Translations under genes and position numbers: made by a program
Shown: positions 3,974-11,993 of the stretch, one piece after another
Layout: each line of letters begins with the position of its first letter
How positions within the stretch are numbered: position 1 is the first letter of the stretch
Source of the DNA: Octopus sinensis
Taxonomy: Eukaryota
Direction: 5' to 3'
NCBI RefSeq assembly: GCF_006345805.1
Contig: NC_043013.1
Coordinates: 1,860,001 to 1,924,000 of the forward strand
Length of the DNA: 64,000 bases
The notes under the pieces: model-generated
Databases searched by the model: none
Told to the model about the DNA's origin: nothing
The model's input: the letters and a program-made list of their open reading frames with translations, nothing else

Positions 3974-4111
3974 AAACCATTCCAATGAGACAACGAATTT
4001 TCCCTGTGTCGTTTTGGCAGCAACCGAACCGAACACCTCAAGCGTCTCCAGTAGACATCTATACCATTCTGCCACCATTGGAAAATCGCCACTCAGACGA
4101 GACTGTTACAG
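3974..4111 (+). CDS. Gene A exon with TEAD-binding omega-loop-like motif
   Basis: Long T-rich tract plus CAG acceptor (3971-3973) and AG|GTCAGT donor (4112); 138 nt, phase 1-1. Translation (E)TIPMRQRIFPVSFWQQPNRTPQASPVDIYTILPPLENRHSDETVT. Only this frame splices without a stop into the next exons. Confidence 0.75.
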
Positions 4112-4340
4112 GTCAGTTGTTTTCGTCAACTTTTCCATTGCTAATTATCTCAACATAAGATATTGCTAATTGTTTAGTGGATGATTATGGATTAGTTTAA
4201 TACACCAGTTTAGCACGTCAATATATCGCATGGTGTAATAATTAATTTATTACATGAATATAACTAATTCAGTAAACACACTTTGACATAATTTCATCGC
4301 GTGTTCTAACTGGTTTTGCTAAAATTCTCTCTTTCACACT

Positions 4341-4595
4341 CTCTCCCCTTCTCTCTCTCTCTCTCTCTCTCTCTCTCTCTCTCTGCTATATATATATATA
4401 TATATATATATATATATATATATATATATATATATATATATATATAGATAGATAGATAATAGATAGATAGATAGATAGATAGATAGATAGATAGATAGAT
4501 AGATAGATATACATGTATATATATATATATATATATATATATATATATATAATATATATATATATATATATATATATATATATATATATATATAT
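4341..4595. repeat. Compound microsatellite (CT)n(TA)n(GATA)n(TA)n
   Basis: Seen directly. Confidence 0.95.
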
Positions 4596-4607
4596 GCATG
4601 TATGTAT

Positions 4608-4975
4608 GCATGGTGGCACTCCGTCGGTTACGACGACGAGGGTTCCAGTTGATCCGATCAGCGGAACAGCCTGCTCGTGAAATTAACGTGCAAGTGGCTG
4701 AGCACTCCACAGACGCGTGTACCCTTAACGTAGTTTTCGGGGAGATTCAGCGTAACACAGAGTGTGACAAGGCTGGCCCTTTGAAATACAGATACAACAG
4801 AAACAGGAAGAAAGAGTGAGAGAAAGTTGTGGGGAAAGAATACAGCAGGGCTCGCCACCAGACCGCTGCCGGAGCTTCGTGGAGCTTTAGGTGTTTTCGC
4901 TCAATAAACACTCATAACGCCTGGTCTGGGAATCGAAACTGCGATCCTCCGGCCGCGAGTCCGCTGCTCTAACCA
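4608..4975 (-). mobile_element. tRNA-derived SINE family D
   Basis: The minus strand starts GGTTAGAGCAGCGGACTCGCGG...TTCGATTCCCAGACC (tRNA-like head). Degenerate pieces of the same body occur near 31640-31750. Confidence 0.65.
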
Positions 4976-4982
4976 GCATGGA

Positions 4983-5560
4983 GGTCGATGTAATTCTGTT
5001 ATTCTGTTATTTGTTTCAACCCTAAGGTTGTGGCCATGCTGGGGCACCGCCAGTGTAATCACCTTTTAATTGGCCAATTCTATGTGATTGACTTTGGTTG
5101 AAGGTGGGAGTTCGATTCCGCTGCCCTCTTTTGAGCTTTCTGCCTTGATACTGGTTCATCTGGGATCATGGGATCTTGAAGACATCAACCCCCTACTCTA
5201 TGGAGATCCCTCAGATGTTTTGGTAAGACGTTAAATAGCTGTGTGTGAGCTCTTGAATCTCAAGCTATTGCACTATATGGTTCTCGCCTTAGATGGGACA
5301 GCTGGGACTTTTGGAACAGTGTAGTGACGTCCATTTTAAGGTCTGGTATAACTCTTAATTCCAACTTTGGTGCCAGCCCCTCCAGTACCTTTCACATATA
5401 TCACTGCATACTTCTTCCGTCTTCGCTCCAGGGAGTAGAGTCGTAGCTCTTTCAGTCTCTCCTAGTAGCCCAGCTGTTCCATTGATACAGTCTTCCTTGT
5501 GTAGCATCGCTGAACCGCCTCAAGTTCTGCTATTAATCTGACACTATAATTATTTATCTG
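4983..5560 (-). mobile_element. CR1/L2-group LINE, 3' fragment
   Basis: Minus-strand translation LEAVQRCYTRK...GY*ERLKELRLYSLERRRKKYAVIY matches the post-RT C-terminal motif of CR1/L2 ORF2. It ends in short (AACAGAAT)-type tail repeats. Confidence 0.75.
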
Positions 5561-5736
5561 TGTTATAAAGAATTTCTGGGGCTACAGAGACCATAGCTAC
5601 TACCATTGTACACGCAACCCAAAACATGAAATAAAGTTAACAACAGGATCAGTAAAAAACAATGTTGGTCTGTATCGGCAATTAGTGAATTCAAACAGTT
5701 CAAAGTAGAATAATTTGGTTTGTTGATAAAAAGTAA

Positions 5737-6052
5737 TACATACATGCATGCATACATACATACATACATACATACATCATACATACATACATACATACAT
5801 ACATACATACATACATACTACATACATACATACATACATACATACATACATACATACATACATATATATATATATAATATATATATATATATATATATAT
5901 ATATATATATATATATATATATATATATATATATAGATATATATATATATATATACATATAATATATATATATATATATGTGTGTGTGTGTGTGTGGTGT
6001 GTGTGGTGTGTGTGTGTGTGGTGTGTGTATATATATATATAATATATATATA
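5737..6052. repeat. Compound microsatellite (CATA)n(TA)n(TG)n
   Basis: Seen directly; source of ORFs 5563-6076. Confidence 0.95.
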
Positions 6053-9943: not shown

Positions 9944-10094
9944 GAATTCTTCAAATGATTCAATCCTCAACAAGAACACAGGATATGAAGCCCGCAGAAA
10001 CGAAATATAAAGTGTTCGAATCTGAAAAAGCTGCATATTTTATGGAGAAAATGTTTTCGGTGCTTAAACCGGATAAAAATAATATGAAACGAAA
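9944..10094 (+). CDS. Gene A internal exon
   Basis: Acceptor TATTTCTTTTCATTCAG and donor AA|GTAAGA; 151 nt, phase 1 to 2. Translation (G)ILQMIQSSTRTQDMKPAETKYKVFESEKAAYFMEKMFSVLKPDKNNMKR(K). It bridges exon 3974-4111 to exon 11732 exactly in frame. Confidence 0.75.
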
Positions 10095-10112
10095 GTAAGA
10101 TTGGTATATCTT

Positions 10113-10520
10113 TTATCTTTTATCTTGTTTCTGTCATTGGGCGGCGGCCACACTGGGGCACCGCCATGAAGGGTCTTGTCCAACAAATTGATTGCAGTAC
10201 TTATTTTTTAATCGCAGTACTTTTTCTATTGATTTCTATTGCCTAACTGCTAAGTTACGGGACGTAAACAAACCAACACCGATTTCCAGCGGGGGAGGGG
10301 GAACAAACACTAACGCACACATACACACACACACTCATATACTCATACACACACACACACACATACGACGGCCTTCCATACAGTTTCCACCAACCAGTTC
10401 ACTCACGAAGGATTGGTTGACCTAGGGCTATAATAGAAGACACACACCCAAGGTGCTGCGCTGTGTAATTGATTCTGGAACCGTGGGATTGCAAAGCGAG
10501 CTTCTTAACCATACAGCCAT
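10113..10520 (-). mobile_element. SINE family B, full length with internal (CA)n
   Basis: Head, CORE-like block and GGCGGTGCCCCAGT.TGGCC tail; lies just after the exon donor at 10095. Confidence 0.7.
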
Positions 10521-11000
10521 GTCTCCGCCTACAGGCTGGGCCAAAAGCCATGTCTCCGCCTACAGGGTGGGCCAAAAGCCATGCACAAAATAAGTTCAAT
10601 AAACTCCGGAATTGTCAAAGACATGGTTCGATTTTCTAAAATTGAATAAAATAATTAAAATAATGAGTAATACACATGTAATTGTACTTGATGAACAAAA
10701 TGAATAAAGAGGATTCAAGGGGCATTTCACTGCGATTTATAGCAGATCGAGTCAGCTCGTAACAGATGCCGCCCTGGTTCATTGGTTATGGCGTCACTGA
10801 TGGCGAAGCTGTTATGGTGTCGTAGATAATGTTGAAGTTCTGAAGGAGGGTTGTGATCATAGCAGTGGTAGTGGCGGAGGTCATTGTTATTGTTATTGTG
10901 GTGGTGATGAGGTGATGATGGTGGAGGTGGAGGTGATGAGGTGATGGTGGTGGAGGTGGTGTTGGCGGTTATTGCTAGCTTCGTTGCTGTCGCCTTGCAT

Positions 11001-11110
11001 TATATATATATATATATATATATATATATATATATATATATATAATATATATATATATATAATAATAATAATAATAATAATAATAATAATAATAATAATA
11101 ATAATAATAT
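11001..11110. repeat. (TA)n(TAA)n microsatellite
   Basis: Seen directly. Confidence 0.95.
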
Positions 11111-11501
11111 TAGGGAGTATGGCTCCAAACTTACAGGGAAAAATTAGATTTAGGATTAAATCAAATTTCACAGCATAAATATATAAAATATGAATTAGAG
11201 ATAAAACCACTATTTGGCAACTTATTATATTATATTTATCATTCTTTTTATACTTTTTGGAAAAAGAAATTATTTAAATTTTATATATATATATATATAT
11301 ATATATATTATATATTATATTAATTATATTTATATTATTTCTTATTTATGTATTGGTTTATGTCTATCACCGTTTGAGTTGCCTAATAGCGGTTTTATCT
11401 CTAATTCATATGTTATATATATATTAATAGTAATGGTAAGACAACAAAAGAATGAATGGGACCGCGATATTATGTAAATAGAGGAATTTATCAGTAATAT
11501 G

Positions 11502-11657
11502 ATATGTGACAATTATTCGGTTGCCATAATAAGACTCCGAGTTTCGGATGTCGGGACGGAAAACTGCTCCGGCATCTCGTCAGTTATCGAGGCAATCAAA
11601 AAATGCTACATCCGAAACACGGAGTTTTATTATGGCAACCGAATATTTGACACATAT
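11502..11657. repeat. Fold-back element / small MITE-like hairpin (50-bp arms)
   Basis: 11502-11551 ATATGTGACAATTATTCGGTTGCCATAATAAGACTCCGAGTTTCGGATGT is the near-perfect reverse complement of 11608-11657; 56-nt spacer. Confidence 0.9.
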
Positions 11658-11731
11658 TATCTTACAGATATATATATATATATATATATATATATATTTA
11701 AAAGGTAATTGTAACTTGTTCTTTCTTACAG

Positions 11732-11993
11732 AACTAAGAAATCTTTGGTACAAAAAAGTGATAGCCCTGATTTATTGAATGGAAACGATCCTTTCTTGGT
11801 GGAAAACATCACAGAGAAGTTCCTGCCACTGAGTCTCAATGAAAGGAACACGATTCAGTCGTATGAAGATGCACCTATCAAGTTTCAGTACATTCCTCTG
11901 GAAAGAGAAACGGAGCCAACACTTTACCTCCCCAGCATGGTGCAGGATCGGAACTACTCAAAAATTCTTTCGAAAATTGTCGAAATGATTTAA
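11732..11993 (+). CDS. Gene A terminal coding exon
   Basis: Acceptor TTGTTCTTTCTTACAG, phase 2. Translation TKKSLVQKSDSPDLLNGNDPFLVENITEKFLPLSL...EPTLYLPSMVQDRNYSKILSKIVEMI* (ORF track 11745-11993); non-repetitive, protein-like composition. Confidence 0.75.

Follow-up and report, generated by a model that had tools for sequence, protein, structure and literature searches.

An uncharacterised octopus gene with a predicted TEAD-binding omega-loop and its unnamed metazoan family

The output of TEAD/Scalloped depends on the cofactor that occupies its surface, and to our knowledge the list of such cofactors outside vertebrates and flies is a short one, viz. Yorkie, Vestigial and Tgi. A stretch of 64,000 nucleotides (nt) from Octopus sinensis (contig NC_043013.1 of assembly GCF_006345805.1, positions 1,860,001 to 1,924,000 of the forward strand; the whole of this stretch is referred to as the window) raises the question of whether one more protein of this kind is encoded there. 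An earlier reading made from the letters of the DNA (the sequence-only reading) had proposed that three short exons within positions 3974-11993 join into a small protein with an isolated motif resembling the omega-loop by which YAP docks on TEAD interface 3, and that this protein is an uncharacterised cofactor or competitor of TEAD, devoid of WW domains, in a cephalopod. The analyses described here establish that these positions contain coding exons 2-4, i.e. the 3' part, of a four-exon gene, and based on them we consider it probable that the encoded protein is a WW-less interface-3 binder of TEAD/Scalloped, serving either as a cofactor or as a competitor.

The boundaries of the three exons are listed in Table 1. 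A long pyrimidine tract and an AG precede the exon at 3974-4111, and the acceptors of the other two read ...ttcattcAG (9944) and ...tttcttacAG (11732). When spliced together, the exons give 551 nt, i.e. 2 nt, 182 codons and a stop, and in the joined sequence only one of the three frames is open, the other two containing many stops. The codon that is split at the 5' boundary becomes GAA (E) when the final G of the upstream exon of Octopus vulgaris is added to it, and this leads to the product of 183 amino acids (aa) that had been predicted. A different frame (NHSNETT...), use of which in transcripts was regarded by the sequence-only reading as fatal to its proposal, is open only within the exon 3974-4111 and encounters stops in the next exon after splicing, and selection acts on the open frame. 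It was also correctly remarked that only the last exon is visible among the plain open reading frames (ORFs), as it is the sole exon long enough to appear there (ORF 11715-11990).

A protein search identified two octopod proteins that had been annotated independently of each other, viz. a 315-aa "hypothetical predicted protein" from O. vulgaris (P0001), to which the window product is 99% identical with two residues differing, and the 317-aa "uncharacterized protein LOC115221002" from Argonauta hians (P0002), with which it shares 67% identity; from the name of this Argonauta orthologue, the gene in the window is probably the one annotated as uncharacterized LOC115221002. In tblastn comparisons of P0001 and P0002 with the window, residues 133-315 land exactly on the three exons, and residues 1-132 have no placement anywhere in the window. 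The O. vulgaris gene model consists of four coding exons of 397, 138, 151 and 262 nt, of which the last three have the same sizes as those in the window, so that the splice boundaries, the tblastn placement and the O. vulgaris exon sizes all uphold the three exons and their in-frame junctions. Window and O. vulgaris are 95-98% identical across long collinear blocks, position 1 of the window corresponding to position 26792 of the O. vulgaris locus (L001), and the 5' part of the gene, which the earlier reading had left to be located, is a single 397-nt coding exon about 16.4 kb before the window. Two further observations on these exons may be recorded. The omega-loop exon (138 nt in octopus and Plakobranchus, 141 nt in Argonauta) has the same phase at both ends, so that its skipping would preserve the frame and yield an isoform lacking the TEAD motif. 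In the O. vulgaris assembly, the last exon, with about 1.7 kb of surrounding sequence, occurs twice in tandem (L001 37738-39503 and 39457-41212), both copies encoding the same C-terminus, whereas only one copy (11071-12834) is found in the window; the tandem could be due to recent duplication or to an error of assembly.

In Argonauta, homologous AG/GT sites are present and these yield an in-frame version of the three exons of 141, 151 and 265 nt. However, the deposited model (P0002) has a micro-exon (…TGQLGL…) instead of the donor and the acceptor that are conserved with Octopus, and due to this P0002 could not be reconstructed from four GT-AG exons. Either the micro-exon belongs to an alternative isoform, or it is an error of annotation. 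When built from the conserved sites, the four-exon model stays in frame (…EETIVTDIPQETT…), and it is this model that was used in the comparison with Argonauta. The ratio of nonsynonymous to synonymous divergence (dN/dS) amounts to 0.17 overall and drops to 0.04 in the omega-loop exon, with dS saturated at about 1.1-1.9, which shows purifying selection; DNA that can still be aligned between the window and Argonauta is limited to the three exons together with a few repeats. As short exons in repeat-rich, transposon-littered introns, they could be suspected of having arisen as open frames by chance, or of being what is left of a decayed pseudogene. However, the low dN/dS and the restriction of DNA conservation to the exons rule out such an origin for practical purposes, and with splice sites and frame conserved in three octopods, orthologous proteins found at E values down to 1e-27, and a full ORF in the oyster on many assembled contigs (see below), it must be considered extremely improbable.

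The motif of interest is located in the first of these exons. Positions 3979-4029 (+) translate to IPMRQRIFPVSFWQQPN, and the peptide around the loop is KKETIPMRQRIFPVSFWQQPNRTPQ. When the loop, I-P-M-R-Q-R-I-F-P-V-S-F-W-Q-Q-P, is mapped on V84-P99 of YAP, the correspondence is I/V84, P85, M86, R87, R89, F/L91, P92, S94, F95, W/F96 and P99, i.e. every position with a role in TEAD contact or in the shape of the loop is retained, as had been proposed, with the substitutions L91F and F96W. In YAP, residues M86, L91 and F95 make up the hydrophobic core contacting TEAD, R89 and S94 are critical, and P92 is required for the fold; of the two substitutions, L91F is present in natural fish YAPs, and at position 96, where FAM181A has a Trp, larger aromatic residues raise the affinity (PMC7784741). 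The Pfam model TEADIR3 (PF15238, "Omega loop, TEAD interacting region 3"), a hidden Markov model of 16 positions with a gathering score of 26 bits, aligns with IPMRQRIFPVSFWQQP over its entire length (1-16/16) at 23.7 bits (E 5.5e-5), and similarly over all 16 positions with the full-length proteins of O. vulgaris (22.7 bits) and Argonauta (25.1 bits). In a search of the PDB with the octopod profile, the top match is the FAM181A peptide QVPMRKRQLPASFWEEP (6l9f_C), which contains the Phe-Trp pair that the sequence-only reading had ascribed to this protein. In the window as a whole, translated in six frames, a loose omega-loop pattern is encountered a single time, as compared with 0.005 occurrences expected in shuffles. 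By sequence criteria, the octopus loop is fully competent. Weak Pfam matches to Ap4A_phos_N and RNA_pol_Rpb4 were rejected, as they are under the cut-off and are not common to the family described next.

The sequence-only reading had presented the protein as a cephalopod one, and this part of it is not supported, as the family to which it belongs ranges from Cnidaria to cephalochordates. In a search of 1.84 billion representatives, the profile built from both octopod proteins retrieved 86 proteins with E<=1e-3, of which 25 have E<=1e-10. Most of the proteins align from about residue 100 to the final residue, and 23 non-octopod proteins have E values from 1.4e-27 to 1e-10, typically over profile positions 100-315. 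From this search 30 clusters were named, and the family alignment and profile comprise 26 sequences. The mollusc members (gastropods and oyster) are from Plakobranchus, Patella and the oyster Magallana gigas (XP_011434467.1), and further members come from the brachiopod Lingula (XP_013416853.1/A0A1S3K2I7), the annelids Dimorphilus and Owenia, the nemertean Tubulanus and the rotifer Brachionus. Among arthropods (chelicerate, crustaceans and insects), members are found in Centruroides, Oratosquilla, Pollicipes, Schistocerca, Timema, Frankliniella and Lamprigera; among deuterostomes (echinoderms, hemichordate, amphioxus and tunicate), in Antedon, Diadema, Patiria, Saccoglossus (XP_002737352.1), Branchiostoma (C3ZLU1) and the tunicate Styela; and among cnidarians, in the corals Orbicella and Desmophyllum and the jellyfish Sanderia. 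Neither vertebrates nor Capitella are represented among the 30 named clusters. Nearly all members are labelled as uncharacterized or hypothetical, a few carry automatic names ('BRE1A-like', 'nucleolar and coiled-body phosphoprotein 1-like'), and neither a name for the family nor an experimental study of it was found in the literature searched. A search with the full-length alignment of the 26 sequences returned at least five proteins and was dominated by low-complexity words.

The gene layout also links these proteins. In Plakobranchus the gene has the same four-exon layout, and its omega-loop exon (6819-6956) is likewise 138 nt in length with the same boundaries; this shared arrangement supports the orthology. 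Further, intron read-through fragments from the oyster (…KVRPKR/GAFNF and …SSEDIT/GEFSN, the slash marking the boundary), a limpet-like and a sea-urchin-like sequence stop at the same boundaries. In the oyster, a full ORF of 441-442 aa is present on many assembled contigs of 1.5-4.6 kb, which are most simply explained as transcripts. Judged from these alignments and layouts, the octopus gene belongs, as a divergent octopod orthologue, to an ancient and unnamed family, the range of which extends from Cnidaria to cephalochordates and includes a tunicate.

The family alignment consists of short conserved blocks amid variable, low-complexity sequence. In the N-terminal part these are GGKRGPS and SSTASGPxYVRPPGFxHH, followed by the loop block, viz. 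a basic run and then (E/D)P(L/V)PM(K/R)LRALPQSFWQQPN, which is almost invariant across phyla; this omega-loop, with a 138-nt exon to itself, is better conserved than any other element of the family. Past the loop come, in order, xSPxxxYxxLPPL, RPVTPPEE, xVxNTDLLFKLF(D/E)xVE and (K/R)RGRPKK, and on the C-terminal side (G/E)DPY(L/M)VxxVTEKLFPQLSLE and, at the C-terminus, LQLVTxxxGDKxVxLPSLxxEQNYSQMLSELVxxx, the short form of this signature being LPSL..EQNYSQMLSELV. The octopod versions of these blocks are GKRGPS, NYLPGF, the loop, IYTILPPL, AAYFMEKMF, NGNDPFLVENITEKFLP and LPSMVQDRNYSKILSKIVEMI, with LPSMVQDRNYSKILSKIVEMI standing at the octopus C-terminus and GKRGPS and NYLPGFRP being encoded by exon 1 of O. 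vulgaris. The two motifs ...Y..LPPL and LPS....NY..ILS, which the earlier reading attributed to unnamed invertebrate proteins, are therefore genuine signatures of this family in the 26-sequence alignment. Two blocks are missing from the two octopods, viz. RPVTPP(E/D)E, which is replaced by ILQMIQSS.../DIPQETTSS..., and the AT-hook-like (K/R)RGRP(K/R)K, in place of which MKRK(T/A)KK is found; the two gastropods examined are also without the latter. By inspection, (K/R)RGRP(K/R)K is carried after the helix by most non-mollusc members and by the bivalves (P0007-P0082); the Pfam AT_hook model is not reported for any of the 26 members.

The only domain model that is consistently matched within the family is TEADIR3, which is recognised in 26 of the 26 members (E<=0.1; best E 3.5e-8). 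Likewise, when the family profile was compared with 177,635 distinct PDB sequences, the 12 best matches were without exception omega-loop peptides bound to TEAD. Matches at E<0.1 are confined to YAP1 (9fza_B, E 1.5e-4; also 8a8r, 5oaq, 3jua, 3kys and others), FAM181A (E 1.8e-4) and Yorkie (E 0.08); Vestigial follows at E 0.24, and all of these alignments fall at positions 101-133 of the family profile. These results also bear on the proposal that the PM.R..P.SFW..P motif binds a partner other than TEAD, its likeness to the omega-loop being either convergent or ancestral but repurposed. The motif comprises only 16 residues, its score in octopus lies below the Pfam cut-off, outside of the motif the protein has nothing in common with known TEAD cofactors, and a partnership with TEAD has been doubted in beta cells for PERCC1 (PMC12881181). 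However, an unbiased search of the PDB gave significant matches to TEAD-bound peptides only, the residues in contact with TEAD or responsible for the shape of the loop are all preserved from corals to tunicates, and the substitutions that are seen are those which are tolerated by, or favourable for, TEAD binding (PMC7784741). Considering these aspects together, a partner other than TEAD appears to us quite unlikely.

The proteins with which the octopus protein should be compared are those of the YAP/TAZ/FAM181/PERCC1 superfamily described by Sanchez-Pulido et al. 2022 (PMC9710580). Within it, FAM181A and FAM181B are crystallographically confirmed WW-less omega-loop binders of TEAD, and PERCC1 was added based on sequence analysis; homologues of FAM181/PERCC1 have been reported from molluscs, annelids, brachiopods, echinoderms and amphioxus, including Crassostrea, Lottia, Lingula, Branchiostoma, Capitella and others (PMC9710580). 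This range of taxa overlaps with that of the present family, and its omega-loop is closest to that of FAM181A, with a Phe-Trp pair (FWEEP in Styela). The question thus arises whether the octopus gene is simply a cephalopod orthologue of FAM181 or PERCC1, in which case the family would already have a name. FAM181A and the octopus family resemble each other in being WW-less and mostly disordered, and in having an isolated omega-loop, which in FAM181A binds TEAD interface 3; the FAM181A loop VPMRKRQLPASFWEEP agrees with that of octopus in its Phe-Trp pair and in the spacing P-M-R-x-R-x-(L/F)-P-x-S-F-W-x-x-P. Complexes of FAM181A with TEAD4 are available as 6SEN and 6L9F. However, FAM181A contains an N-terminal Nt-F helix and is without the LPPL, LLxxLF, DP..V..TE and C-terminal NY..LS..V motifs, nothing outside of the loop aligns, and most of the conserved motifs in the octopus family come after the loop. 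Against working copies of the human sequences (in relation to the numbering in PMC9710580, FAM181B was exact and PERCC1 off by one), the family profile gave 25.8 bits for FAM181A, 11.2 for FAM181B, 13.8 for PERCC1 and 24.0 for YAP, in each case over the omega-loop only; owing to the provisional nature of these copies, this comparison is indicative rather than definitive.

PERCC1 and FAM181B, like the octopus family, are small, disordered and WW-less, with a TEAD interface motif and a Ser equivalent to S94 of YAP. They differ in having a conserved N-terminal helix and an interface-2 helix, LxxLF, which is 38-60 residues upstream of the loop (PMC9710580), whereas the sole LxxLF-like helix in the octopus family is situated about 55-250 residues downstream of it, and the C-terminal signature is unrelated. 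In the comparison with these human copies, neither the Nt-F helix of FAM181 (FAM181A/B, C19orf85) and the LxxLF of FAM181B about 60 residues upstream, nor the Nt-P helix of PERCC1, its LxxLF 38 residues before the loop Ser and its C-terminal region, found a counterpart in the octopus family. The one accession given in the text of PMC9710580, R7UUL4_CAPTE, is not among the named family clusters. In view of the differences outside the loop, we regard orthology with FAM181 or PERCC1 as unlikely, and the gene is provisionally filed in the unnamed family and in the superfamily of proteins with the TEADIR3 motif, rather than as a FAM181 or PERCC1.

The other TEAD partners are more distinct. The omega-loop of YAP/TAZ/Yorkie is the same as that of the family and the predicted docking site on TEAD/Scalloped is also the same, but the octopus protein, unlike these, is lacking WW domains, the interface-1 strand, an upstream interface-2 helix, HxRxxS LATS sites and a PDZ-binding tail. 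A motif scan of the octopus protein revealed neither the HxRxxS/T LATS consensus nor PPxY, and nothing in its recognisable features ties it to the Hippo kinase cassette. Vestigial and VGLL2 resemble the octopus family in being WW-less, and they carry an omega-loop in addition to Tondu (6Y20 is a weak match, E 0.24), whereas no Tondu (Vg_Tdu) is detected by Pfam in any of the 26 members. The absence of WW domain and Tondu, originally noted for the three exons, extends to the full-length octopod proteins and to the 26 family members, in which Pfam reports no other domain besides TEADIR3.

The protein as a whole, of about 315 aa, is predicted to be a largely disordered, basic chain carrying short linear motifs (Table 1), and in this respect it resembles the TEAD-binding regions of YAP, FAM181 and PERCC1. 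An AlphaFold2 monomer model from a shallow alignment of five sequences has a mean pLDDT (predicted local distance difference test) of 44; for P0001 it shows three short helices at residues 206-216 (AAYFMEKMF), 249-258 and 304-314, and a turn in the loop. Within the first of these helices, F216 is invariant and L212 and L215 are nearly invariant in the family alignment. A scan for basic runs identified KRKTKK at residue 227, which is likely a nuclear localisation signal, and Lys/Arg-rich stretches flank both the loop and the helix, making nuclear localisation plausible.

These features suggest the following course of events. Its flanking basic stretches would direct the protein into the nucleus, and there the omega-loop would fold on binding and insert its M, F and F (M86/L91/F95 in YAP) into the interface-3 pocket in the YAP-binding domain of TEAD/Scalloped; the R (R89) and S (S94) would make polar contacts, and the W (F96) would cap the hydrophobic core. 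The LLxxLF-type helix, the DP..V..TE.F.P block and the C-terminal NY..(I/L)LS.(I/L)V helix may provide a second contact with TEAD, or bind other partners, or both. The protein would thereby compete with Yorkie/YAP and Vestigial at interface 3, acting as an alternative cofactor or as a competitor, with either an activating or a repressing effect, and the conserved Ser could function as a phospho-switch, as has been proposed for the equivalent S94 in YAP and for PERCC1 (PMC9710580). That an isolated omega-loop can suffice is known from FAM181A, which binds TEAD through interface 3 alone (PMC10146773).

A number of points weigh against this interpretation. The octopus loop scores just under the gathering threshold of TEADIR3, and the octopods have lost RPVTPP and RGRPKK, two blocks that the family otherwise conserves well, so that the octopod protein may work differently from the rest. 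The annotated octopod gene models are computer predictions, and that of Argonauta deviates at one junction. Further, in a cell study of PERCC1, the motif of which is comparable, no induction of YAP/TAZ targets was seen and TEAD partnering was questioned (PMC12881181), and for every member of the family TEAD binding, and with it any role independent of Hippo, is something that we infer from sequence. On balance, WW-less binding at interface 3 is still the interpretation that we consider probable.

A bolder interpretation of the same data may also be considered. The family helix DLLFKLF(D/E)xV resembles the interface-2 motif LxxLF(N/D)xV of YAP, FAM181B and PERCC1, but it sits after the loop and not before it. 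If this resemblance is meaningful, then the family could be a third ancient branch of omega-loop TEAD partners, which was present in the cnidarian-bilaterian ancestor, is lost or unrecognisable in vertebrates, and has an inverted layout, with the interface-3 loop first and the LLxxLF(D/E)xV helix 55-250 residues later. Such proteins could clamp interfaces 3 and 2 of TEAD in reverse chain order, touch DNA and occupy TEAD independently of the Hippo kinases, and in most phyla the AT-hook-like RGRPKK and a C-terminal effector motif could follow past the helix. However, a PDB search with the helix block retrieved calbindin and a designed protein and not YAP/TAZ, and although the block aligns with YAP in the expected register (LfKLFDvv to LEALFNAV), the score is -0.6 bits and the resemblance has no statistical support. 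The inverted arrangement is thus a speculative and improbable elaboration.

Table 1. Coordinates of the gene, its motifs and the surrounding features (positions in the window unless a locus is named; a slash in a sequence marks an exon junction)
Feature	Position (strand)	Sequence or size	Basis or remarks
Coding exon 2/4	3974-4111 (+)	138 nt, phase 1 at both ends; product (E)TIPMRQRIFPVSFWQQPNRTPQASPVDIYTILPPLENRHSDETVT(G)	Preceded by ttatttttttatttttacAG, followed by GTCAGT; omega-loop and LPPL motif
Coding exon 3/4	9944-10094 (+)	151 nt; product ...KYKVFESEKAAYFMEKMFSVLKPDKNNMKRK	Preceded by tttcttttcattcAG, followed by GTAAGA
Last coding exon 4/4	11732-11993 (+)	262 nt, including TAA at 11991-11993	Preceded by ttctttcttacAG
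Omega-loop (TEAD interface-3) motif	3979-4026 (+)	IPMRQRIFPVSFWQQP	TEADIR3 match, PDB match
LPPL motif	4057-4080 (+)	IYTILPPL	Family (Y/F)x(I/V)LPPL, about 10 residues past the omega-loop; L165, P166, P167 invariant
Predicted amphipathic helix	10024-10056 (+)	EKAAYFMEKMF	Octopod form of family NTDLLFKLF(D/E)xV (LLxxLF); AlphaFold2, alignment
Basic stretch	10078-10094, on into 11732-11741 (+)	MKRK/TKK	At the position of family (K/R)RGRP(K/R)K; alignment
DP..V..TE block	11787-11828 (+)	DPFLVENITEKFLP	Family (D/E)DP(Y/F/C)(L/M)VxxxTE(K)LFPxLSLE; D248, P249, P261, L262 (nearly) invariant; predicted helical (AlphaFold2, 249-258)
C-terminal signature	11922-11990 (+)	LYLPSMVQDRNYSKILSKIVEMI-COOH	Family LPSLxxEQNYSQMLSELVxxx-COOH; L295, P296, N303, Y304, L308 (nearly) invariant; terminates in a predicted helix (AlphaFold2, 304-314)
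Argonauta model junction region	L002 about 18934 and 17769-17909 / 26244-26394		
Tc1/mariner-type transposase remnant, split by a stop codon	1501-2181 (-)		DDE_3 35.9 bits, HTH_Tnp_Tc3_2 20.3; intron 1, just upstream of the omega-loop exon
Mos1/mariner-type transposase fragments	30579-31139 (-), 36254-36595 (-)		HTH_48 54 bits, Transposase_1 54 bits; downstream of the gene
Peritrophin-A chitin-binding ORF	32261-32692 (+)		CBM_14 51 bits
Non-LTR (long terminal repeat) retrotransposon	62077-63998 (+)		RVT_1 98 bits, weak endonuclease match; runs past the window end
Assembly gap	23617-23716	100 N	
Long TG/TA-rich microsatellite arrays	26247-27075, 4309-4746, 5703-6112, 27279-28463		

Of the remaining features in Table 1, the ORF with the clear CBM_14 match probably belongs, as an exon, to a neighbouring gene. 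A CBM_14 is also carried in Argonauta by the gene adjoining the orthologue (L002 2437-5627 (-)), which hints at a conserved neighbourhood. The highest GC content in the window (0.447) falls on the non-LTR retrotransposon, and the longest ORFs in the window (YVCMYVCM.../IHTYIHTY..., on both strands) were rejected as genes, these being simple-repeat artefacts of the microsatellite arrays.

With regard to the significance of these results, the novelty implied by the sequence-only reading for a WW-less TEAD cofactor was overstated, as the gene is already annotated as uncharacterized, Pfam TEADIR3 flags its relatives, and the concept of WW-less omega-loop proteins in invertebrates has been published, viz. 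for FAM181A/B and PERCC1 with their mollusc, annelid and brachiopod homologues (PMC9710580). What is new is that a specific, testable function can be proposed for the octopus locus, and that a pan-metazoan family of orthologues is recognised, with a fixed exon structure and several conserved motifs that are unexplained. For the octopus gene itself the gain is mainly one of annotation, with the absence of two family motifs from octopods as a minor curiosity of its evolution. For the family as a whole, the omega-loop is among the best conserved that are known, being nearly invariant from corals to amphioxus and present in cephalopods. If its members do bind TEAD, then they would form a widely distributed set of competitors or alternative cofactors that lack a recognisable connection to LATS, and this would be of relevance for growth control and regeneration in non-model animals, and for the origin of FAM181 and PERCC1.

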